A DNA stretch of 64,000 bases from Marsupella aquatica (taxonomy: Eukaryota > Plantae > Marchantiophyta), in assembly GCA_973895155.1 (NCBI GenBank), contig OZ316897.1, forward strand, positions 3,380,211 through 3,444,210. The letters are read 5' to 3'. Position numbers and translations under genes: made by a program. Below, in pieces: positions 1 through 56,961 of the stretch. The notes below the pieces were generated by a model. The model did not search any database. It was not told the DNA's origin and saw only the letters and a list, made by a program, of their open reading frames with translations. Within the stretch, counting starts at the first letter, position 1. Every line of letters begins with the position of its first letter.

Positions 1-173
1 TTGCCTCTCCCTCCCCCTTCTCCCCTCCCCCTCTCCAGATGTGGGCCCAGGATAGAGGGTCGTGGATGCGTGATTCTGTGGGGAGGGAATGCAGGCTTGC
101 AGGTTGGGATTTTGGCAACTTCAACCGTTACGAATGGCCACAATATGTTCATGCCTGGTTTACTATTTGTGAA

Positions 174-1740
174 GTAGTTGGTGGACCCCCTAGCTATTTT
201 GCTTAGCAAGACTCAAGTAGGAGGAAACAAGGGCCACTATGTGCAAGGAGGAGAAAGAGACAAAGCAGATAGAGAGAGACAGAGAGATGATTAGGCGCAT
301 TACTACTAGCCAGTGCCTTGCTTTTGAGAGGCATAGAGAGCAATTTGAAATTTGAAAGGGTTCAGATCTCTAGATCACATCTCGTGATCCTAAATGAGTG
401 TCAACTATCTTCTTTGCAATAGTTTTGGATTAACCCAAGACTATAGGATGGCTTCAATCGATGCAAATATTTGCCCTTTCTCAATACTCAATTCATTACA
501 TACATTAAATCATCACTCAGATTGATCCTCTCCTCTATTTTGGATTTTCCTGGAAAATGAAGCATCTAGACTGTTTTACTTTCCATTCAATGCTTTGCCC
601 AGAATCATCCCCGGAATTATCCATCCATCCCGTGTTCAAAAGAAAATATATGGGATACAACCTTCTGATCTTGCTTTGAGTGGAGCTCAAAGTGGTTTGT
701 ATTCAGAGAATTACAATAATGAAGCTCATATAGGTTTATGACACTGGTGAATCGAGGACGTACTGTTGCGGAAAGTTGCGAGCTGTCTTAATGTTAAACA
801 TGGCTCAAGCTTAGAAGACCTCTGGTCCTTGAAACCTTGACAATTTTGTGGTGACACAAGCTCAGCCATGGGGATCAATGCATGGCCAGCTTTGTGATCA
901 AGTATAATTAAGAAGACTTTGAATACCTTCAAGCAGTCGCAGATTTTGTATTTACATGACTTTGCAGATTTTGCATTTACATAATTTCACTGCAGTCTTG
1001 TAAACAAATTGTAGTCAAGTACAGACTAGTGCTAGTGAGTCCGGTCTTCCCTTGGTTCTCACAATACTAAACATGAGAAGCGAGTGCCATTAGCCAGTTT
1101 TGCACTGAAACTACCCAAAGATTTTTGAGTTTGAAATGGTTTATGCAAATCACCAAAGGAATCTGGTCATGATGGCATTTATCAACCGGAGATAAGTGGG
1201 CATATGGAGAAGTTACCTAGCTTGCCAACTACTGGGCAGCTATTAGACTTCTTCTTGTCTTTATCGTCTTTGGATTTACCCCCATCGACCCCAAGACAAA
1301 CCAACGCCAATTGAAGACAAGTACAAGTACATTTTCAGGATAATCCAAATAGGTTAGATTATTCTCTGTATGTGTGAAAAACTAGACAATATTTGGGTAG
1401 TTACATAACTACCTTTCCTTTTTACAAGATCACTGTTTCATTATTGTTAAACACTCTTGTATGTAATAAAAAAGAATTATTTTACTTCTACAAAATAACT
1501 AAAGTAACTAAACCGGTTACTTGCTAAAAACAATTCATCTAGTCCTTTGTGTTTTTGTTTTCTCTATGCCTTGTTTTTACTGTGCGGCGACCAAGAATTT
1601 TCTTCCAAATTGGCACAAACAAGAAGGTAGCAGTTATTTTGATTCCCAATAAAGACTAGTGGTGTTTGGTGCACGTCACCATGACATGGTGTGCTGTGGT
1701 GCCTGGAATTTTGGAAAGGACCCCTCATGGCAGTCCGTAA
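174..1740. mobile_element. Non-autonomous TSD-less DNA element, copy 1 (same family as 55489-56325)
   Basis: Left end GTAGTTGGTGGACCCCCTAGCTA resembles TTAGTTCGTGGACCCCTTGGCTA at 55489. The right ~240 bp (1500-1740, ending GCTGTGGTGCCTGGAATTTTGGAAAGGACCCCTCATGGCAGTCCGTAA) is homologous to 56085-56325. Flanks rejoin as TGTGAA|CTAGT. No transposase ORF. Confidence 0.7.
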
Positions 1741-3329: not shown

Positions 3330-3680
3330 TGTTACGTACAGTACTCAAAGAAACATTGTATGCAACATCCAACAAAACACACAAGTAGTTGACACAAGAG
3401 ATATATGGTTCACCTCTCTAGAGGCTACATCCATAGGAAAATACAAGATAGCTTTACTTAGCACTATGCCTTTCGCTCATACTGAGTCTCCATGGACTAA
3501 GAGCTCTCTTAATCTTAGATGACTTTGTAATAATGAGCCTAAGTTTCACTCAGTCACATGCTAAGTCTCCTAGTGAATATTTGAATGAATATAGTAGTGG
3601 CCTACCATAGATAATTTACTAAATTATAACATGTTTGTGTGGGGTACAACCCATTGGGTCACACTCAGAAAGCCTCAACA
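3330..3680 (-). mobile_element. Degenerate solo LTR (Ty1/copia-type)
   Basis: GACACAAGAGATATATGGTTCACCTC...GGCTACATCCATAGGAAA...AGCTTTACT is shared with the LTRs at 23165, 53782 and 55224. Ends CTCAACA at 3680. Left boundary approximate. Confidence 0.6.
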
Positions 3681-12866: not shown

Positions 12867-14396
12867 ATGAGCACCGGGGCTGTTCCGCCGGTCTTGTTGT
12901 CACCGCCAAAAGGAGGGGGTGGAGGAAAGAGCGCGTCCGCATTCAGTCCGGCGGTGGTGGCCATCATTGCCGTGCTCGGCTCGGCCTTTCTGATCGTGAG
13001 CTACTACCGCATTTTCGCGAAGCTCTGCACGCGATGGCAAACCAGACGCGCCGTCCGAACGGAGCTCCAGAGCCAGATCAACGCGGGCGGCGTCGACATG
13101 GACGCCAACCCGTCCACACCCGCGCGTGGACTGGACGAAGCGCTTATCAAGAAAATTCCCATTTTCGAGTACATACGAGGGGACGGATTCACCGCCGAGA
13201 CCGAATGCCCCGTCTGCCTCATGGAATTCGCCGATAAGCAGGAGCTCCGAATGCTCCCGAAGTGCGCCCACGCCTTCCACCTCGCATGCATCGATACTTG
13301 GCTGAGCAGCCACTCTAATTGCCCTCTCTGCAGGGCTAACGTTTTCACGGAGCAGGTGATGAACCAGTATCCCCATCCTCTATCCCCGCCACAGCTCAAC
13401 TTCTTCGGCACCCCGCCGGATGGAGGATATTCTCCAGCCGATTACTCCATGGGTGAGTATGGCAGCCGATTCAATGGTCACGGGCGATCTCCGCAGCCCA
13501 CCCTGAGAGGGCTCCTTAACTTCGAGGATCACCAGCAGATGCAGCCTCCGATAATGTGGTCCGAATCAGGAAGAGCAGACGAGCCCGGAGAGGATTCCTT
13601 GCGGCTCTACGACGCCCGGGAATTCGGCGGCGATTCCTCAGCTCGGCACCATGTGTTGGTGATTCCAGGGTCTGGGAGTTTAGGCAGCGCCCCTCCCAGC
13701 ACTGAGCTGCCCGGCGGGGAGAAAGACATCGTCACGCGCACGACCAGTTTCAAGGAGCTGCAGAGGAGCCGATCGAAGGGAGACGGTGACCACAATAAAT
13801 GGCACCTCCATTCGGCTCGCCGGTCGGCCAGGCGGAATCCCTTCTCGAGCATGCGGTCCTTCTCGATGGGAACCTCTCGGAGGCTCGTCAATGCGCTGGA
13901 GTTCCTGGACCTGGATGGAATGCGGAGCAGCAGCAGCGGCAATGGTAAAGGTGGTGACAAGCTCTATAGCCCGTACGAGTATGGAATCACGGAGACGCCT
14001 GATTACGAACCCCGTGCCTGTGTCCTCACCGTGACACCGGCCGATTTTCCGTCCCCCTCAGGAGACCGAGACAGAGACGTAGAAATAGGACCAGCAGGAC
14101 GAGTCGCTGGAGCAGCAGGGTCTAGCTCCGAGACCGAGAAGAAGGATTCGTTACGGTCTTCGCTCAATTCACATGATAACAACTCGTTCGGAGACTTGAC
14201 AGACTCAACGGGAGCGGCGCTGAAGATCTCGTCGGGTCGGCAGGACAAAGGCAGGTCGATGTCCTTCCGGAGCACATTTAGCGTGAAGAGATCTCTCTCC
14301 GGAGGTATTAACATGTTCTCACTCAGATACCCGGGGAAGAGCAACCGTGTCGCCTCCTCCACTTCCTTTGATTCCAAGGAGTTCAATGAACAGTGA
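12867..14396 (+). CDS. ATL: ATL-family RING-H2 E3 ubiquitin ligase, single coding exon, 509 aa
   Basis: N-terminal TM helix (AVVAIIAVLGSAFLIVSYY), GLD motif (GLDEALIKKIP) and RING-H2 CPVCLMEF...LPKCAHAFHLACIDTWLSSHSNCPLCR, followed by a long Ser/Arg-rich tail (RSFSMG, KRSLS). Confidence 0.95.
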   Translation: MSTGAVPPVLLSPPKGGGGGKSASAFSPAVVAIIAVLGSAFLIVSYYRIFAKLCTRWQTRRAVRTELQSQINAGGVDMDANPSTPARGLDEALIKKIPIFEYIRGDGFTAETECPVCLMEFADKQELRMLPKCAHAFHLACIDTWLSSHSNCPLCRANVFTEQVMNQYPHPLSPPQLNFFGTPPDGGYSPADYSMGEYGSRFNGHGRSPQPTLRGLLNFEDHQQMQPPIMWSESGRADEPGEDSLRLYDAREFGGDSSARHHVLVIPGSGSLGSAPPSTELPGGEKDIVTRTTSFKELQRSRSKGDGDHNKWHLHSARRSARRNPFSSMRSFSMGTSRRLVNALEFLDLDGMRSSSSGNGKGGDKLYSPYEYGITETPDYEPRACVLTVTPADFPSPSGDRDRDVEIGPAGRVAGAAGSSSETEKKDSLRSSLNSHDNNSFGDLTDSTGAALKISSGRQDKGRSMSFRSTFSVKRSLSGGINMFSLRYPGKSNRVASSTSFDSKEFNEQ

Positions 14397-22220: not shown

Positions 22221-23164
22221 TAAGTTTCATGTGGACGGCCTTCACAATGCGGCCCTAAGCTGGACGGATAGTTTTGGAAAAAGGAGTATCTATTCAATCT
22301 TTTTTTCCCCCTGGTCTCATGTGTGCTGACTGTCTGAATTTTTCGCTCATCTTTGCTGTTGGGTACCCTCCCTGTAGGAGCATTGTGAAGAGGATTTCGG
22401 TTATCTTTCCAATGCAAAGACTAGAATCTGAATGGGCCAGAAGGTATGATACCTTTGCCCTGCCTGATGAGGGGCTTATGGCATCAAAGCTTAAAGTGAA
22501 TAATATGCTAACAAGTTTTATTTTGAGGGTCACATTGTGAAGGACCGCTCACATGCAAGTTGGGCCTTTATTTCTGTTGATTTGAGACTATCAAGTGTCA
22601 AGTGTCTGGATCTCTCAAGGGCCCCATCAACTAACACTTTTCATTCTGGGGGTCCATCAACCATATACCTCATTGGCCTCCACTTATATGGAAAGTGGTT
22701 GAAACTAGAGTCCACCGCCATTTTGATTCAAAGTCAAGGTGAGTTAGTATTTGATCTCGACATCAACTTGGTATCAGTTGGCCAGTTAAAATGGCCAAAT
22801 ATAGGGGTGAGATGGCTTTCAATGCAAACATTTTGATTCACATTCACAATGAGTCAATGTTTAATTGACATCCACATCAACTAGTGGGTGTTCAATACCT
22901 AGATGAAACTGTGTTTAGGCCTCCCATAGATGTTTTCCCCTCCATTCCCTAGAGTTCAGAATAATGGACTGACCTGGAGTGAAGGAGGAGACTCTAGCTT
23001 TGTCCAATAGGAGGGGTGAAAATAACTCACCTGGCAATTTCTGGTTTAAGCAACTTGTTGGCAAAGTTTATTGAGATGGAAGAGTGATAGCCCAGTTTTG
23101 CAAGGCTCAATTACTCAGAAAAACCCTACATATATGGTATTTTTTGGGTTAAGCAACTTCTCAT

Positions 23165-23430
23165 TGTTGAGCAAAATTACCCTTATTCATAAGACAACAT
23201 CCATAGAAAACACAAAAGTAGTCAACACAGGAGATATGTGGTTCACCTCACCATAGATTACATCCACGGGAACACACAAGAGAGCTTGACTGAACTCTAA
23301 GTCCGTCGGCCATACCAAAGCTTTGCAAACTCAACTCTTCATATTTCCCAACTGGCTCTATAACCATAAGTCTAAGTTGCATTCATTAACTACATCATGC
23401 TTGTGTAAGTAGTAGTTGAATATCTAATGG
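23165..23430 (-). mobile_element. Degenerate solo LTR (copia-type) between divergent GPX and FBA
   Basis: Starts TGTTGAGC. Contains GTAGTCAACACAGGAGATATGTGGTTCACCTC...TACATCCACGGGAACACACAAGAGAGCTT, matching the other LTR copies. Right end approximate. Confidence 0.65.
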
Positions 23431-34699: not shown

Positions 34700-37337
34700 A
34701 ATCTACTTTACTCTAGGAAAGGTGTAACAGAAACACCACTTTAAGTAGCCAGAGAATTGCAGCGATAGCCTCAAGGGTTTTATAGCCTTAGTTGCTTACA
34801 TACTTTTGAGGTACATTTATTACAAGGACAGCAATGATGGTCATATAATGGTCTTATACCTCGACATGATAACCTACGGAGTAGAGGATATTGAGTCGAC
34901 ATACCCATACAAAATATGACTGAAACTATGATGGACCATTTGCAAGCGGCATGGATCACTATTAGATATACTTTTTATTCAGATAGTATAACATTTTGGG
35001 TGTACACAAATGTTTGGTACAAAAAAAAAACCAAAAAAAAAAGTTTGGTACACCATTGTCTTTCTAGGTGTCAAATGGACAAATGTTGTAGTCCATCCAA
35101 TGATAACTTCTGGGGAAAACATCCTCTCCAAAAGGGAGAAAAAAATAAAATTGATATCCTGGAAATTAGTATAGAACCAGATAGTACGTACTACCTTATG
35201 GCCAAAAAACAATCGATGGCCTAAACTATATTCGCCATTCTTTTCTCGATCTTCACTCGTCACAAATTTTTTTATGGGGCTTCTGTGCATATTTCTTGTG
35301 AAACTTTGAAATAGCAGTTACTCCCACAAATCATGCAGACTGCCCTCAGCTTCGTTGTTTTTTGCACTTTGTCAATGCATAAGAACAGAGTGCTACATAA
35401 ATCTACAATGGTAGCATATATTTTGGAAGCTTTTGTCACTTTACTCAGGTGTAATGGCTGTAAATGTTTCTCTCAGCTGTCTCACAATTTTATTTTAGAA
35501 TGAAGTGTCTAAATTGACATGCACACCTGGCTTCACTCGACTAATGAGAATTTGACCATTAAACTTAGGTGGGAATTATTTCTCTTTTGCACAGATAATA
35601 GATTTTTTTTTTTTACTTGAATCTTGAATACGAGTATCGTCATTTTCTCTCTCGATGAATTTTTTGCATGAATGTAAAGTTAAGAATTAGAAATTGAATT
35701 TCTTTCATTTGTCCTTTGTCATTTACTCAAAGTTACACTTCACTTCTTTAGAACTAAAAAAATTCATTTTCCATATCCTTTCCCTCCAAGCCTATTGAGT
35801 TTGTTGGCTCCATAGCTCATTAGATGGTGTTTTCTTGGATCATACCTTTTATGGGCGTTTCAGATAGCAGTACGGTAGCATCTTCGTATTCCGGTATTTA
35901 TACCTAGCTACGATCATTTCATGCATGGGTACCCGCAGAGGATAAGAAGATTCCAAGAAGATGCTGAATCTGAGCCGTCCATTAATTCTATCGATGGTCA
36001 AGATATTTCTGCAGCCCCTGAGGAATAATAATTGGCCATGACTGTCGGGGCACTTTCAGTGTACCCACCGTATATGTTTTGGTACGGGGCTGATGCCCTG
36101 GTCAGGTAACGCGACGGCTGACGTCATGTTTCCAACCGTAACCGAACGAGGCATTGAATGTCCATCATTTCAGTCACGGCTGTTTGTTGTACGCATTATA
36201 CTGATCTCTTTCTAAGTGCACAGTCCGGGAAGAAGCCTTTAGTAGGGTTTGCCACTTGGAGTTCGCATTTCTCGATTACAATAGGGTGTCTCGTCACTTG
36301 GAATTCACATTTCTCGATTATAGTAGGGTATCTCAAAGTTTCTAAATTAGGGATGATGACATTAGATCCTAGAGGGGTGTTGTTCATTTTTTCAAAAGGT
36401 TCTGGAAAGGTCTGTTTTCCCCACTAGCCTCTATAGTGACTGGTGGGAATGCCATAAGACCAATTTTGATGGCAACAAAATTATGTACTAGGAGTTTAGT
36501 AGTCCGTAACTTTGTGTGACAGTAACCCATAACTAGGGAGTCAAGGCCCATCAAAGTTTCAGCTTGGAGACACCCTAATGGGCAAGAATAAAATTGTTAT
36601 CATGCAACTGTCTATATTTATATTATGCATAATTTAAAAAGAAAACATCTATTCTACCTTAATAGTCATGCATACAACCTTATGCGCGTTTTGCACTTAT
36701 GTATCTGTCCTCTAATGAAGCCTTCTTTGTACTTACAAAAGTCCAAAAACACACTGCAAAGTGGTACGAAAAAGAAAGACAATAGGGACACCTTGCAGTT
36801 ATCCAGAGTTTTCAATCCTGGAGTGTACACTTGGAAAGTGGTCACACTAGAAGGGCTACAGGACGACAAAGGCCACGACATCCGATATGCAGCCGCTACA
36901 AGGTTTGATCCCCGAACAGCCTCTTTGAGTCTTTGGGAACAACCTTGGGAACACCCTTGGGAACAACCTGGAGTCCTGGAGTTGCCAGGCTGGGGTACAG
37001 TACAGGACCGGACCGCATGGTACATGATTTTGTTTAGAAGAGTCTCGGAGGGAAGGGGTCATGGTACAGTACCAATAATCGAGGACTGTGGTTAGCAGCT
37101 GTAGTTAACCAGTGACGGTCAACATTTTCACTGTCCAGTACTTCATCACTAACAAGTACTGTACTGAAAGCCGTCCCCCCTGGGACCCGACATCGGCCCC
37201 ACCCGCTTGGTGCAACTGGCATTGGGAGTCGCAAACGCCAAAGCATTTGCAGGCCCACACCAAAAACGTTTTCCCGGCCTCTTCCAGTACAAATAACATC
37301 TTGGTAAGTGCAATCTTGCTTTGTGACATTTCAATAT

Positions 37338-38760: not shown

Positions 38761-40765
38761 CGGCCCGCTCCTCAATCCCTCTCGTTCCCTCTCGTTCTCG
38801 CTCGTGCTGCACTACTCGTGTGTTTCCTGTTCCGTTTCTCTCACAATTGAACGCTTTGAGACGAAACGAAATATGAACAGTAGGAGTAGAGTGGTGCAAT
38901 AGCTCTCGTTCTGGCTCGTGCTGCAGGTGGTGGTTTGCCTGCTTTCTTGTTTCCTCGAAAATGAACTTCATGCTTCAAGAGATGAACAGTGGGGCTATCG
39001 CTCTCGTTCTCGTTCTCGCTCGTGCTGCAGGTTGTTTGCTGCTCTGATCAGAATGAGTGCGTTTGGCTGCTTCCTTGTTTGTTTCCTCGAAATTCAACTG
39101 CATACTTCGAAAGATGAACAGTGATGTAGTAATGCAGAGGGAGGGAGCCAGAGAGGGTGGTCCGCATGGGGGACGGAACCTTTGGGAATGAGGCAGGCAA
39201 GCGGTGAGTTTGCCTGCCTTCTTGTCGGAGCGAGCTCCAACGTTGTTGTTGTTTGATCGCATGCATTCTCTCGAGCTCTCGATGCTGTTCGAGGCGCTGC
39301 TTGGTTTCCCTGACATTCGATCGTCGGTGCCCGGGAGACGTGGGGATCACGCGAGCAGGGCAGCTCTAGATAGTGTCGTAGGCTCTACTTCCTTTCTGAT
39401 GGTACCCCGCAGACACGGATGATGGAGCGTTATGCTCTGTCTAGCTGAGCTCCCAGGCCCCGCCGTAGCTTACTGCTGCTCCTGCGGCTCACACTGGAGT
39501 AAATTTTGCGCCAGAGGCTAAACAATACTTTTGTGTTCCGTTCGAGAGCATAGCACGCGCAGGTGCTGATATTCTGGAATCCAAGTTCATTTACTTGGCG
39601 AGGACCGCAGCGACCTTTATTCCCTTGAGCAGCAGCTTTAGATACTAGTGTCCCAGGCTTTCCTTCCTTTCTTCGCATCAGAACTCCGTCGTCGCTCTGC
39701 ATGGAGAAATGGAGCTCAGCAGCGCGCGGACAGGGGTGATGAAGCAGTGGGATAAATCTCTCGTCAGCTCCTTCCTGGCACCTGTTCTCCTGCGGCTGTC
39801 TATGTTCTCAAACGCGGGTCCCATCATCCGCCAGGCTAAATAAAATTCTGCATTCGTTCGATAGGAGGGGTTGGCTGTCTTTACGCTAACGTTCACTCTT
39901 CTACCTGGGAAAAATAAAGTGTACTTTTCGTTTGGAAGCAGAAACTCGGCTGCCTGTATTCTTGAAGAGTGCATCTCGAGGTCGTTCATCCGTGTGGGCA
40001 AGTTTTTTTCCCTGCAATTCGTTTGAAGCATGTAAGTCGGCTGCTGATATCCTTGAACAGCCTGGATCTCAAGTTCGTTGATCCGGCGGGGTGTTTTTTT
40101 CGTTTGTTTCGCTTGGAAGCATGCGAGCCGATTCGAGTTGCATGGTGCGCCAATGCTCGGCAAGTATCTGTGCTCCTGCCTTGCACTACTGGTCGTCCAA
40201 TGAAGTTCGACCCGCAGTAGCATGTTTCTTCGTTTTTCTTTCTATTCTTGAGATGCCAATGGTGTCGTTAGTTCGGCTTTCCTGGCGTCATCGTTGCCTT
40301 CGCTAAATTTTTCATGACGCGAAGCAGCAATATTTGGATACTCGCGCTAGCTCTTCGGCCTGCATTCTCTCAATGCTGTGAAGGTGCCGCATTGCGAATT
40401 GGCTCCAATAAAGTGTCGCGTATTTCTCCTTTCGAGCGTGAGCTTCTTACTGGAAGTTCTTGTTCTTCTTCTCCTGGAGCATTTCCAGAAGCTCTCCTGG
40501 TAGCCCTCGTTATTTCGACCTGCTCCAAAGCTCCTCTGTGGTGCAGTAAGGGGTCACATTCCATGCTGCGTTATTCTCTCAGTCGAGCCGGAGATGATGG
40601 GGCGCGGTGGAAGAAAGGCCCGCGCACAGAAGGCTGGGTGTAAAAGAAGAGTTGAGAAGAGGTGATGGTCAGGTGAAGAACATGGACGAGCATTGGCGTC
40701 AGACGCGAGGCGCCTCACCGGTGGAGGAGAGACAGAGGAGGGTGGGTAAAGAATCAGAGGTGAAA

Positions 40766-43700
40766 ATGAGAATGATGACGAATTCGTGGAAGTTTCTCTT
40801 GTTCGTCATTTCGGGTGTAACCCTGTTGATGCCGATGGCTGCGACGACCACCAACGAGACGATTTTAGATGTCAACGCCTTGTTGGATTTCCGGAGCAAA
40901 ATCGAGGATCCCGGGGGAAAATTGAGCAGTTGGAGTGCCAGTACTTCACCCTGCGGCTGGGCTGGAGTGGTCTGCAACGTGGTGGGTAATGTGGTCTATC
41001 TTCAACTCAGCAATCTTGGTTTGAGAGGTACAATCTCCCCCTCTATTGGCAATATCACACGCTTAACGGAGCTCGACCTTTCCAACAACTTTTTCAGCGG
41101 ACCAATACCAGATTCTCTCAGCAACCTTATGCACCTGGCAAACTTTACTGTTGTCAACAACTCTCTCAGTAACACCATCCCGGATTCTCTTGGTAGCTCG
41201 GGAAGTCTTATGCACTTAGATCTGTCGTTAAATTTGTTGTCGGGAAGTATTCCTTCAGCAATCTGTCAATCCACTGGTCTCAACGTTATTTCATTGACAA
41301 ACAATACGTTGATAGGCAGTATATCTCCGAATATTAGCTATTGTCAGTCTCTTCAGAGATTATTCCTCGGTAGCAATTCACTGACTGGGAAGATTCCTGA
41401 TGAAATTGGACAGCTCGCAAGCCTCGTCAGTCTAGACTTGTCCAGCAACAACCTTGGAGGATATATTCCCGCTACGTTCAGCCAAAGCACTCTGACGTAC
41501 TTAAGCCTAGCAGGCAACGAGTTACAAGGCGTAATTCCATCCCAGCTCGGCAATATTGGAGGTCTCAGGAGGCTGCTACTGAATAATAACAAGCTTGTTG
41601 GCCCCATTCCTCCTTCTCTGGGCAACATAACTAATCTCGAAGTTCTTGACCTTAGTGAGAATGAGTTATCGGAGCAGATTCCACCTGATCTTGGGAACCT
41701 ATCTATGTTGACGACTCTCTCGTTGAGGGCAAATCGCCTCTCCGGCAGTATTCCATCGGCTCTTCAAGGCTGCTTGTCGTTGCTTGATCTTGAACTGGCG
41801 GAGAATAACCTGACGGGAGATATTCCACCAGAGATCGGTGGCATTTCTCGTCTCACATACGGCCTTAACCTCAGCTTCAACAGATTGAATGGGTCCATAC
41901 CACAGGAGCTTGGCCAGCTACAGAATCTAGTTGCGCTTGACCTCTCTTACAACCAACTCGAGGGGCATATTCCCTCAACATTGGGCAACATGCGAAGTCT
42001 CATTTTCGTCAACCTCGCGTACAACGAATTGACCGGGAGCTTGCCCAGTTTTCGGCAGGGCACAGTAAACGCAACCGACTTCGAAAGCAACGCGGGCCTC
42101 TGCGGTTCGCCCCTGCCACCCTGCGACCAGTCAGGAAATCCGATCGTAGGCCGCAACAAAGTCCACATCTGGGTGCCTATAGTATCTGGAACAGGTGCGG
42201 TTTTGATATTCTTGGTCATCGGCATTGCCGCATTTTTCTACTGGAGATTGCAGTGTGGCTACGCTCCAACAGAAACTGAACCCAAGCCTCCTTACGCCGA
42301 GGGATGTCTGTTCGTCGACGACGAGAAACCTCTTGCATTCAGTTTTGAGGAGGTTGTGGACGCCACGCAGCTCATTTCTGTTGCTGCACCGGTTGGGAAA
42401 GGGCGGTACAGCACCGTCTACGGAGTGGTCATGCACAGTGGCCAACAAATTGCTGTGAAGAAGCTGAAAATTGACACGGAAAACTCATCTTTGACCCGGA
42501 GGATTACCTCCGAGCTTCACAAAATCGACAAGATGCGGCACCCGAACCTTCTGAGACTGCTGGGTTACGTTTTACAAGGTGACTCGTTGCTTCTCCTTTA
42601 TCATTTTTGCCCCAACGGCAGTCTCGGGGAGTGGCTGCACAGAAAGCCAGAGTCTGTCCTCGAGTGGAGCACCAGGTACAATATTGCCTTAGGAGCGGCT
42701 CAGGGCCTTGCGTTCTTGCACAACAACGTGCATCCACCCTTCATGCATCGGGATGTGAACAGCAACAACATCCTTTTGGATGCTTCTTTCGAACCGTTGC
42801 TGGGGGATGTGGGATTGGCGAAACTATACGATCCATCGAAGGAGACGGAGAGCATGACTGCTGTCGCTGGCTCCTTCGGCTACATTCCTCCAGGTAAATA
42901 TCTCCCTGGAATCCTAATGAATTTTTTCCTGCTAGATTTCAGACTTCTACGATTTTCGTCGTCGAATGTCTTTTGCAGGTGCTTCTACTGTAATCATCAC
43001 AACAATCCCCAAATCGAGCCTGCGAAAGCGATCTCAGTAGTGTATATCTGTGTCTTCTGCTCGGACCTTTTTTGTCCTCGATGGAGTAAATCGTTCGGGG
43101 TGTAGGAGTCATGCAACCTGCATTGCTCCAAAATCAGCACTCCTACGCTCTCCACGTTTTGTAATATCTTCTTTTCAAGGATCCAACCTCATTCTGACAA
43201 CTTACTATTCCTGGAAATATGTTTTCTCTACATAATCAGATGATCAACAGAATATCCAAAAAAATTGCATACATGTCTGAGGAGTGAGGTTTTTCCGTAT
43301 GCAAGCGAGGCGGCACTTTCTGTGTTTATCGAGCCTTCCCGCGTTTTGTTCTAGTGGTGTACCAACTCTCCTTGAAACTTTCGCCGGATCAGCAGGATTT
43401 TGATTGCAAACCGAGAGTTTTGAATCCAGCGTTGAGTTTTCTGAGAAGAATAAAGCGTATACCAACTATTTCGTTTGGCTCACCTCTGCAGAGTATGCTT
43501 ACACCATGCGAGTAACGGAGAAAAGCAACGTTTACAGCTTTGGCGTGGTACTGTTGGAGATGCTATCAGGCAAGCAACCAGTGGACCCGAGTTTTGGAGA
43601 AGGTTGTGATTTAGTGTCGTGGGTACACACCGCCTCTCAAAGAAAAGAGACACCCGAGCAACTTCTTGATGCTACAGTTTCGACTGCGTCATTTCCTGTG

Positions 43701-43856
43701 CGCCAGGAAATGCTGAGAGTCCTCAACATTGCTAAGCTCTGCACGAGCACTTTACCCGCAGAACGGCCAAGAATGAAGGTCGTGGTCGAATTGCTTCAAA
43801 AATCGAAAGCAGTAGATGTGCTGCCCTTATCAATAGAAAGCGCAGAAGCGATGTAA
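40766..43856 (+). CDS. PXC3: LRR receptor-like kinase, PXC3/At2g41820-like, ~830 aa
   Basis: Exons 40766-42893 and 43492-43856 (intron in GYIPP|EYAY). Signal peptide, LRRNT (CGWAGVVC), about 15 LRRs, NAGLCGSPL cap, TM helix and kinase domain. The C-terminus GEGCDLVSWVHTASQRKETPEQLLDATVSTASF resembles my recollection of the At2g41820 clade. An in-frame ATG at 40682 is an alternative start. Confidence 0.88.
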
Positions 43857-53781: not shown

Positions 53782-54072
53782 TGTTGGGGATAATCCTTAT
53801 CCCGAGACACCATGCACATGTAAACACCATACAAAGTAGTCGACACAGCGAGTACTGATTCACCTCACGACCGAGGCTATGTCCACGGGAAAGCAAGAGA
53901 CCTTTACTTCTCTCTTGCTCCACTCCAACAATGAACTGAAGATCCACCAGGGGCTGACATTAGCCCTGGTTATATACAACATGCATCACTACTAACCTCA
54001 GCTAAGTCCTAACCTGAGTTAGCCTAACTGCGGTTAGCCCTAGAGTCACAAGACTAAGAGCAATACTCAACA
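53782..54072 (-). mobile_element. Solo LTR (copia-type), 291 bp
   Basis: TGTTG...CAACA termini. 5-bp flanks AACGC and AATGC (TSD with one CpG transition). Internal motif shared with the other LTR copies. Confidence 0.85.
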
Positions 54073-55223
54073 AATGCACGGGTATTGAGTTAATCCTATA
54101 CATGAAACATCCATGGAAAGTTCTTGACTCGAAACTTTTGTTTGATTGTTTATAAGGGCCTATTTCTTATATATGTTGTGGTACCATGGGAATCAAGTAT
54201 ATAAGCAAGGCATTCAAATTGCATACGAGAAAATGGATGTGTCAAGACATGCTCTGTTTGGAAGTATTCTAGGGTACTTTCTTTTCTAGATTCAAAGATA
54301 CTGATAATTATTGTGACTTACACTATTTTAGGGACAAAAAGTGTCACCCGGACTACTAGAGAGTACAACTAGCTAATTCCAATGACACTAGTAACACTAT
54401 TTTCCATCATGACACTATTGTTGGGATAAATCTAGACCAAATGAGACAGCTTCAACACGTGTGAATAATATCCACAAACTCCACATTGAAAGTAAGTGGT
54501 TCACCCTTCTCGACTACTTCCACGGCCATGAGAGAAAATTAGTGATACAAAATGATTACATCTGCCATAGCCAATGTGCTAGAGCTTATTCTCTCGCCCT
54601 CTCACCCTTTTTCTTGAAGAGTGAACCTTCAAGTGCAAGCACAAGTGTGTGTGTGTTCCTATTGGGTACACCCCTCCCATGGTTTATGGCAATCTGGAAC
54701 TCAAACAAATTCCATCCTAGTTTGTTGAAGTCTAACTAGTTCTATGAAAATAAATAGGTTACATTAGAAGCATGACCTAACACTTTAACACTAATTCTGA
54801 TGAGGATGTAATCTCTTATCAAATTCCCCTTTGTTACTCCAGCCTACATTATGTGCTTTCCTCAGTAGATATACCAGGTTTTGAGTTTGGTGCTCAATAG
54901 AGTTTTGGTTTTTATTTCCTTTGTTGAACACTGGTGGGCATTTAGGCTCTTTTCTCATCCCAGGAAAGCTTTGGGATCTTTATTGGATAGTTTGCCGCTG
55001 GTTATCCCGTCTCTGGGATTAACACTTTTTGTTCTTTGGTAGTCTTACAAATGTCTTACAAGATTTCCTTTTTGGATGTAAGTAATATCATGTCTTAGAC
55101 ATGGTACTGATGCAAAACTTATGCATGACTACCGCTTTTCTAGTAGGGGGTTTCAAATATAGGGTCGCGGGTTATTTTTCTGGAACGCTATTGTAGATTG
55201 TAACATAGTCCGCGGGTTTCTTT

Positions 55224-56404
55224 TGTTATATATTGCTCTAGTCTTGTGACTCGTGAGCTAACCACAGTTAATCTAACTTGGGTTAGGACTTAGCAAATGT
55301 TAGCGGTTGTGCGATTGTGCATATAGCCAGGGCTGAAGCCAGACCCTGGTGGAACTTAGGCTCATGGTTACGGAGCTAGTTGAGAGATAGGGAGAGCTTG
55401 TGCTGTGGATGCTTGGTATGGCCGGTCGGCCTAGAGTGCAGTAAAGCTCTTGTGTGTTCCCGTGGACGTAGCCTCATCTGGAGGTGAATTAGTTCGTGGA
55501 CCCCTTGGCTAATAAAATCAGGGGGGAAGAGTCAATCTGAGCCGTCTCCATTTCTTATTTTCGGAAATCTCGTCCGTCCATCATAATGGCCAATCTATGG
55601 CTCAAAAGAAAGATCGCAAATAGATCTATGGATGGGTTCTGTCCGTTTTGCAAATGGGTTAATATTTTTCAAATGAAAAATTAAACAAATCCAAGCCTTC
55701 CTAGTAGTCGATTTTGTTGATTTTACGATCTTTGCTGTCCATTTTGTAATGCCTCTAGAAATCTTATTCATCCATGTTAGAAGGCGATCTAGGGTGCAAA
55801 AGAAAGATCTCCATGAGATCTACGACTGGGTATTTTTTGTTTTGAGAATGAGTAAATAGTTTTGAGTATAAAATTTGATGAACTTTCAAGATTCCAGTCA
55901 TTCCTCCTCTCCGATCCTAGGTTTCTATGTGCTCTTCCCAGCATTAATGGCCGTACAATACGAGAGGTCCTTACATACCGGGAGTTGTGGTTTAACAAGG
56001 AAGTTATCAAGTTAGTTATTAGTCATTATTTATTATATGAAAAATACTTTTTATAAATCTTTGAATTTAAGTTTTAAAATTAGAAATGTAACTAAAATGG
56101 TTACATAGTGACAATTTTAACCGTCTTGCTCTTTGCATTTCCAATGTTTTTATTTTTCTTTTTACGGCACGACGTCCCAAAATTTACACCCAAATTGACA
56201 CAAACACGAATGAAAACTATAAGTTTGATTCACAAAATCGACGAGTCTTGTTTGTTGCGGTTGTTGTTGATGTGGCACGCTGTGGTGCCAGGAATTTTGG
56301 AAGGGACCTCTAGTGGGGTCCGTAACCACGTATCTCTCTGTGTCGACTCTTGTGCGTTGGATGGTTCATGGGCTTGCCGTTGTGAATGTCATTTATGCTC
56401 AACA
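55224..56404 (+). mobile_element. Solo LTR (copia-type) interrupted by a nested 837-bp element
   Basis: TGTTA...CAACA termini with perfect TCTTT TSD (55219-55223 and 56405-56409). LTR halves 55224-55488 and 56326-56404 rejoin as GAGGTGAA|CCACGTATCTC, the motif seen intact at ~3400 and ~23235. Inverted homologue of 53782-54072. Confidence 0.88.
55489..56325. mobile_element. Non-autonomous TSD-less DNA element, copy 2
   Basis: Boundaries fixed by the split LTR. Ends are TTAGTTCGTGGACCCC and GGACCTCTAGTGGGGTCCGTAA (terminal hairpin plus subterminal inverted repeat). Only AA is shared between the two junctions. Confidence 0.82.
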
Positions 56405-56961
56405 TCTTTTGCAGCTGCTGGTATAACTCCAATTTTTTTAGGGGTTGTACTGCACCCACAAGTCCGGCCCTTAACATGCGGCCCATATTTCTGACGCAAA
56501 TTGAAGTCCTTGAAACCCTCTGAATAGGATAATGTCCTGGTTAGAGGGCATTATGAGATATAATGTCAGTAACTAGGACATTAATGTGCGTAAAAACTTG
56601 AGTGATTTTTTGGTAACAAACAAGAAAAATTGAATCTTTGAATAGAAAATCCAAGCGAAAGGGCCTGCAATTGGCCAAAGGCATGAAAGAAGTTAAAAAC
56701 AGATCTAGTGATTTTGATAAAAATTATTATGTTATTTTATTTGGTAACACTATATTTGGGTTTTAAGTTTCTTCTTTTTGTGATACTTCACATAATGTCC
56801 TCTTCAAAAGAAATGAGATTGTATGGGTAAAAAAACAAAAAAGAGATTATATGAGAATTTAATACAATCAAAGATACAAAGAAAAAAATCACAAAAGTAT
56901 TTATGCATGCAAGATTGGGTTCTGGCTGCGATTTCGAAATAGCAGACGGTTCCGACAATAA

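Follow-up and report, generated by a model that had tools for sequence, protein, structure and literature searches.

Transposons that neither duplicate their target nor end in inverted repeats are the hardest to delimit, and their ends and targets are usually guessed from where alignments stop. The IS200/IS605 elements of prokaryotes, which use a Y1 HUH enzyme and move by ‘peel and paste’, insert 3′ of a tetra- or pentanucleotide that lies outside the element. Replitrons are HUH transposons with a helicase-less Y1 Rep that occur in liverworts; most families make no duplication, the right end holds a palindrome, non-autonomous derivatives measure about 0.9 kb, and the hallmark of the group is a direct terminal repeat of 5–11 bp (Craig 2023, PMC10288648). 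Replitron-1 inserts 3′ of RG and has a right end that reads ...AGG, and Craig cautioned that the target of a site-specific element aligns between copies and could mimic a terminus, an ambiguity raised as unresolved (PMC10288648). [quoted passage not shown] Elements of the Helitron2/Helentron group (HLE2) have subterminal inverted repeats of about 11–15 nt, with the 5′ arm 2–4 nt and the 3′ arm 20–60 nt from the terminus, then a stem–loop, and they use a T^T target (PMC4067079, PMC5148889, PMC11417382).

Here we describe two copies of a non-coding element in the liverwort Marsupella aquatica. Both lie in the window analysed, a stretch of 64,000 nucleotides of contig OZ316897.1, and one is nested in a repeated long terminal repeat (LTR). 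Because this nested insertion provides an exact empty site and copy 2 occupies the same six-base target, the ends of the element and its target can be fixed from sequence alone. The core observation, an insertion without target-site duplication at an exactly known empty site, is real, and it is strengthened by copy 2 at the same target. The element itself is a lead and not a demonstrated new class.

The sequence-only reading of this locus had described an 837-bp insert that splits a solo LTR with intact TG...CA ends and an intact TCTTT duplication, and that description is borne out (Table 1). When the insert is removed, the two halves of the LTR align straight across the junction to three sister LTRs on the minus strand (54072–53782 and the fragments 23381–23209 and 3549–3376), two of which share the ...CAACA 3′ end of the host LTR. 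The uninterrupted site reads GAGGTGAA(C/T)CA in all three, which confirms the claim that the empty site can be reconstructed exactly. The sister at 54072–53782 (minus strand) is itself a second complete solo LTR of 291 bp, with TGTT...AACA ends and 5-bp flanks that are nearly the same (GCATT/GCGTT). Its orientation is opposite to that of the host LTR, which lies 1.1 kb downstream, and its GTGAATCA site carries no insert.

Table 1 Features of the two copies, the host LTR and the unoccupied sister sites, in window positions
Feature	Position	Strand	Remarks
Copy 1, 837 bp, non-coding	55489–56325	+	Boundaries may shift by 1–2 nt (AA ambiguity)
Copy 2, 1567 bp, non-coding	174–1740	+	Between GTGAA (169–173) and C (1741)
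Conserved 5′ end, 23 nt	55489–55511	+	19/23 identical to copy 2 at 174–196
Conserved 3′ block, about 261 nt	56065–56325	+	67% identity to copy 2; 45/57 in the final 57 alignment columns
3′ terminus GTAA	56322–56325	+	GTCC before and host C after, in both copies
Internal direct repeat of copy 1, about 106–119 bp	55564–55682 and 55758–55875	+	About 70% identity
Terminal hairpin GGACCTC-TAGT-GGGGTCC	56304–56321	+	4 nt from the 3′ end; weak; copy 2 keeps GGAC/GTCC only
6-bp hairpin TGGCAC-GCTGTG-GTGCCA	56273–56290	+	Copy 1 only; in copy 2 the 5′ arm is mutated and the 3′ arm sequence conserved
Conserved perfect 7-bp palindrome ATGTAAC-N7-GTTACAT (copy 1)	56086–56106	+	
Palindrome in copy 2, AAGTAAC-N7-GTTACTT	1502–1522		
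Host solo LTR, 344 bp	55224–56404 including the insert		TG...CA ends; starts TGTTAT, ends CTCAACA
TCTTT target-site duplication of the host LTR, 5 bp	55219–55223 (left) and 56405–56409 (right)	+ (left)	
Host LTR, left part	55224–55488	+	Starts TGTTAT, ends ...GGAGGTGAA; aligns to sister LTRs, all minus strand
Host LTR, right part	56326–56404	+	Starts CCACGTATC, ends ...CTCAACA
GTGAA, LTR bases directly 5′ of the insert	55484–55488	+	Proposed target/nick motif; three sister LTRs have it uninterrupted; GTGAA also borders copy 2
Unoccupied site GAGGTGAACCA in sister LTR	3406–3416	-	
Unoccupied site GAGGTGAACCA in sister LTR	23239–23249	-	
Unoccupied site GAGGTGAATCA in neighbouring solo LTR (54072–53782)	53856–53866	-	

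Since the three sister LTRs carry the site uninterrupted, the insertion of copy 1 added 0–2 bp. The dinucleotide AA ends both the left flank and the insert, so the register of copy 1 is ambiguous by 0–2 nt, and from this copy alone ‘no duplication’ cannot be told apart from a duplication of 1–2 bp (A or AA); by our own arithmetic, a 2-nt ambiguity is expected by chance in about 16% of junctions. The junction sequences agree with those quoted earlier, AA being the only bases shared, which corresponds to a duplication of 0–2 bp.

Similarity between copy 1 and copy 2 starts exactly 5 nt before the left boundary defined by the LTR and ends 1 nt past the right boundary, and both read GTGAA^(T/G)TAGTT...GTCCGTAA^C (carets mark junctions). 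The copies have the same orientation, each directly 3′ of GTGAA and 5′ of C. The sequence that they have in common is confined to 23 nt at the left end and ~261 nt at the right end; their interiors are unrelated, and their outer flanks are random with respect to each other, with 9/35 identities upstream and 14/39 downstream. Conservation extends over the block from GCTGTGGTGCC through GGAATTTTGGAA to GGACC and over the terminal GTCCGTAA. In addition, the direct motif GGACCYC occurs in both copies at +10..16 from the left end and at about -22..-16 from the right end. Both copies are old, with 67–79% identity in the shared block. Copy 2 lacks the internal direct repeat of copy 1, whose two units start 194 bp apart.

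Two independent copies thus have common ends and unrelated flanks, which shows that the element is mobile and upholds the earlier view of copy 1 as a non-autonomous mobile element. These observations also bear on an origin without transposition, by segmental duplication or by templated filler DNA from double-strand-break repair, which would fit the 2-nt junction microhomology and the presence of two copies only. Such an origin fails, because both boundaries coincide to the nucleotide at two loci with unrelated flanks while the interiors differ; moreover, the LTR empty site establishes the boundaries of one copy independently. We therefore consider it extremely improbable.

GTGAA has a frequency of 0.00135 per position in the window, and at this rarity the probability of meeting GTGAA plus C a second time by chance is about 3 in 10,000 (our own arithmetic). 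Because the three sister LTRs identify GTGAA as host DNA, the simplest reading is that GTGAA^C is a specific, oriented target. The opposite assignment, in which GTGAA is the left end of the element itself and GTAAC is the target, is much less likely, since it requires a 1-nt deletion in the host LTR relative to all three sisters.

A paralogue of the joined flanks of copy 2, which would represent its empty site, was not found within the window. The host DNA that follows copy 2 (1741–1752, CTAGTGATGGAG) resembles the 5′ end of the element (GTAGTTGGTGGAC) at 9/12 positions with one gap. This likeness could be due to chance, to a target preference or to the stub of a second copy in head-to-tail arrangement; the 3′ flank of copy 1 has no similar sequence. 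BLAST, an nhmmer profile of the 3′ block and mismatch-tolerant motif searches detected only copies 1 and 2 in the window. On the minus strand at 22619–22663, two tandem near-matches to the 5′ end of the element, TGGTTGATGGACCCC and TAGTTGATGGGGCCC, lie 30 bp apart; no 3′ end was found near them, and such matches are expected by chance at 2–3 mismatches. These near-matches and another at 36502 were rejected as further copies, being without a partner end and within chance.

The sequence-only reading had further characterized the element as hairpin-ended, with the GGGGTCC arm of the terminal hairpin doubling as the inverted complement of GGACCCC near the left end. Neither feature exceeds chance or is conserved between the copies. 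The terminal hairpin has five contiguous Watson–Crick pairs in copy 1 (seven if T.G is allowed) and four pairs in copy 2, and a stem at least as long is present in 9% of random 30-nt windows of this sequence, on which ground we rejected it as a classifying hallmark. When the last 84 nt of copy 1 were folded as single-stranded DNA, z was -2.1; the same stretch of copy 2 gave +0.7. The GGACCCC/GGGGTCC complement between the ends shortens from 7 nt in copy 1 to 4 nt in copy 2, and we calculate by our own arithmetic that 7 nt are expected by chance in about 3–4% of end pairs. As the hairpins and the end complement are weak or lost in copy 2, they cannot carry a classification.

The terminal hairpin and the end complement are less well conserved than a 7-bp palindrome that lies about 220 nt from the 3′ end. 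This palindrome differs between the copies by one compensatory pair, T-A in copy 1 and A-T in copy 2, and its stem holds GTAAC, the pentamer of the 3′ junction (GTAA^C). Each copy has exactly two plus-strand GTAAC sites, one in the palindrome and one at the 3′ junction, which are 234 nt apart in copy 1 and 233 nt apart in copy 2. Seen in two sequences, this pattern is suggestive rather than conclusive.

Integration is precise: the target is not duplicated, save perhaps for the ambiguous AA. The right end of the element, CGTAA, is similar to the GTGAA target. The two ends are asymmetric, 23 nucleotides being conserved on the left against about 261 on the right, and they do not form inverted repeats. 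Given the precise integration in one orientation, the target on the 5′ side, the target-like right end, the asymmetric, non-inverted ends and the unrelated interiors, a combination that follows the logic of HUH/Rep single-strand transposases, we propose nicking 3′ of GT(G)AA, a rule also obeyed by Replitron-1 and IS200/IS605. Copies 1 and 2 would then be decayed non-autonomous members of one copy-and-paste (or peel-and-paste) DNA transposon family, moved in trans by an HUH/Rep-type single-strand nickase. This enzyme would make three single-strand nicks, each 3′ of GT(G)AA: at the left junction, at the right terminus and in the target. It would then join the released strand into the target, and host replication or repair would complete the second strand. 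Its recognition sites would probably be the best-conserved parts of the element: the last ~55 nt, GGACCYC near both ends and the 7-bp GTAAC palindrome. We give an even chance to this reading, in which the transposon is non-autonomous, specific for both site and orientation, and mobilized by a nickase of the HUH Rep type acting as just described. Against it stand the presence of only two copies, both old, in a window whose 35 longest open reading frames include no transposase; the lack of relatives among the metagenome, prokaryotic and viral contigs scanned; the hairpins expected of HUH substrates, which are weak or not conserved at the termini; and termini that, as fixed by the empty site, have no direct repeat and do not match those of Helitrons. 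In addition, the junctions are explained just as well by a 2-bp duplication of AA or by a crossover core of 2 bp.

The crossover core would belong to a site-specific recombinase acting through a circular intermediate, either an IS607-like serine recombinase or a Crypton-type tyrosine recombinase, with GTGAAC as part of the target. Serine recombinases of the IS607 kind need only a 2-bp identical crossover core, and in both copies the junctions are ambiguous by exactly this length (AA); the lack of duplication, the lack of inverted repeats and the specific oriented target also agree with this mechanism. Tyrosine recombinases normally need 6–8 bp of overlap identity, for which the shared sequence is short: AA are the only bases identical at both junctions, or GT.AA if an indel is allowed. 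The 35 longest open reading frames (ORFs) of the window contain no recombinase gene, and we are aware of no description of Cryptons or IS607-like elements from land plants. We judge a recombinase to be unlikely.

A 2-bp AA duplication would instead make the element a relic of a DDE cut-and-paste transposon, with KTAGTT...GTCCGT as the element proper and with inverted repeats that are very short or eroded. AA...AA flanks both copies, and TTA plus GGAC(CCC) is inverted at both ends if a 5-nt indel is allowed. DDE elements and MITEs carry terminal inverted repeats and a target-site duplication of fixed length. However, we found no inverted repeat of at least 10 nt joining the termini, nor any complementarity between the first 8 nt and the last 8 nt. 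Any duplication would be AA, of 2 bp at the most, whereas TA (Tc1/mariner) is the only common 2-bp duplication of which we know. The strong asymmetry of the conserved ends also speaks against a DDE relic, and the conserved GTG before AA and the conserved C after it exceed what a 2-bp duplication would account for. An ordinary DDE cut-and-paste family is unlikely because there is no regular duplication and there are no terminal inverted repeats, and we regard the relic as distinctly improbable. The original suggestion of a non-autonomous, non-DDE family that fits no described group perfectly accordingly stands in part: the lack of a regular duplication and of terminal inverted repeats supports it, as do termini unlike those of Helitron1 and Helitron2, but the hairpin and asymmetric inverted repeat on which a Helentron affinity had been based are not conserved.

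Coding content was assessed in both copies and in the window as a whole, which is nuclear DNA of a land plant. The ORFs of copies 1 and 2 gave no Pfam match, and of the 35 longest ORFs of the window, those with a match belonged solely to a RING-H2 gene and an LRR receptor kinase; none encoded a transposase, Rep, helicase, recombinase or reverse transcriptase. The former is an intronless ORF of 509 aa for an ATL-like RING-H2 E3 ligase (12867–14396), whose best relatives are a sequence in a public sequencing-run assembly (74%) and proteins of the leafy liverwort Calypogeia fissa (73%) and of Marchantia (46%), which assigns the window to a leafy liverwort; the latter, an LRR receptor-like kinase gene at 40607–43856, extends over at least two ORFs. 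Neither copy matched an Rfam family above noise, and an origin from an RNA gene or a SINE is therefore rejected. Exact-pattern scans of metagenome contigs gave 0 and then 25 matches, and the 25 were dismissed as chance matches, since neither BLAST nor nhmmer showed similarity beyond the pattern; the scans of contigs from prokaryotic genomes and of viral contigs returned 0 matches.

These searches also bear on a derivation from a sequence-specific non-LTR retrotransposon with a restriction-like endonuclease, a non-autonomous derivative of which could enter a blunt or near-blunt cut through target-primed reverse transcription. Such an element would have a specific oriented target, a defined 3′ end and a long conserved 3′ region, and would change its target little or not at all, all of which is seen here. 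However, no poly(A) or simple-repeat tail is seen on the element, both copies keep an identical 5′ terminus, and the two targets, with no more than 6 bp in common, do not represent a conserved multicopy gene. A reverse-transcriptase remnant was found neither in the ORFs of the two copies nor among the 35 longest ORFs of the window. A retrotransposon origin thus appears very unlikely.

Under the HUH nickase reading, the element can be compared with each of the described HUH groups. It resembles IS200/IS605 in the absence of duplication, in its single orientation, in its insertion 3′ of a specific 4–5-nt target and in a right end formed by a related short motif. Unlike the element, whose left end has no conserved hairpin, IS200/IS605 members are prokaryotic and have well-formed subterminal hairpins at both ends, and we know of no TnpA in plants.

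The likeness to Helitron1 consists in the absence of duplication and inverted repeats, in a short 5′ and a longer 3′ conserved end around heterogeneous interiors, in a small GC-rich hairpin near the 3′ end (copy 1) and in a host A on the 5′ side. Unrelated interiors between a short conserved 5′ end and a long conserved 3′ end are likewise the arrangement of non-autonomous Helitrons of the FoHeliNA1 type. The termini differ. In place of 5′-TC, the plus strand starts with TTAG in copy 1 and GTAG in copy 2, and the minus strand with TTAC in both. The plus strand ends in GTAA and not in CTRR, with a hairpin that is 4 nt, rather than 10–12 nt, from the end and that decays in copy 2. On the minus strand, the 3′ end is CTAA^T in copy 1 and CTAC^T in copy 2, again not that of Helitron1, and the only stem there has 5 bp and a 13–14-nt loop, in copy 1. 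The insertion site is GTGAA^C rather than A^T, with A^C, A^A or G^A as the possible registers and no duplication.

Similarity to Helitron2/Helentron elements and their HINE/DINE-1 derivatives lies in the GGACCCC...GAGGTCC palindrome, 4 nt from the 5′ end of the minus strand, with a partial inverted partner near the other end. This inverted repeat is shorter than those of HLE2 elements, at 7 nt in copy 1 and only 4 nt in copy 2, and its partner is 10 nt from the terminus with no stem–loop after it. Insertion at T^T is possible on the minus strand, through the AA/TT ambiguity only. The long conserved end would furthermore be the 5′ end, the reverse of the usual HLE2 pattern (PMC4067079, PMC5148889, PMC11417382). 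Most likely, the element was mobilized by an HUH enzyme as a non-canonical variant. Within the HUH reading, the chances are about even between a Replitron-type partner (helicase-less Y1 Rep) and a non-canonical Helitron-type partner.

Like Replitrons, the element shows no inverted repeats and no duplication, an oriented insertion 3′ of a short target that resembles its right end, a palindrome in the right end (the terminal hairpin itself being weak), short non-autonomous copies and a liverwort host. The pairing of the GTGAA target with the CGTAA right end parallels that of RG with ...AGG in Replitron-1. It is unlike Replitrons in that the termini fixed by the empty site have no 5–11-bp direct repeat, the left GTGAA being host flank and the right terminus GTAA; only GGACCYC recurs, 10–22 nt inside both ends, and the two copies, being non-coding, offer no Rep gene to link with the element. 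An alignment between the copies without the LTR empty site would have taken GTGAA for a terminus of the element, exactly as Craig cautioned. A more specific proposal, possible though rather doubtful, is that the element belongs to a Replitron-type or unclassified HUH-type family with a sequence-specific target of 5–6 nt, in which the apparent left ‘terminal direct repeat’ GTGAA would be the host target matched to GTAA. If so, the paralogous LTR empty site would show the first true end of such an element outside Chlamydomonas and would yield, for a plant Rep transposase, a definite rule for the nick site together with oligonucleotide substrates. If the ends are found to be linked to a Rep gene, they would reveal directly how a plant HUH transposase chooses its target and would serve as a test case for Replitron termini; if they are not, the element would be one more small, dead, unclassified repeat family. 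The Replitron comparison is at least as good as any other, and under it the element would be a new member or variant of that group rather than a new class.
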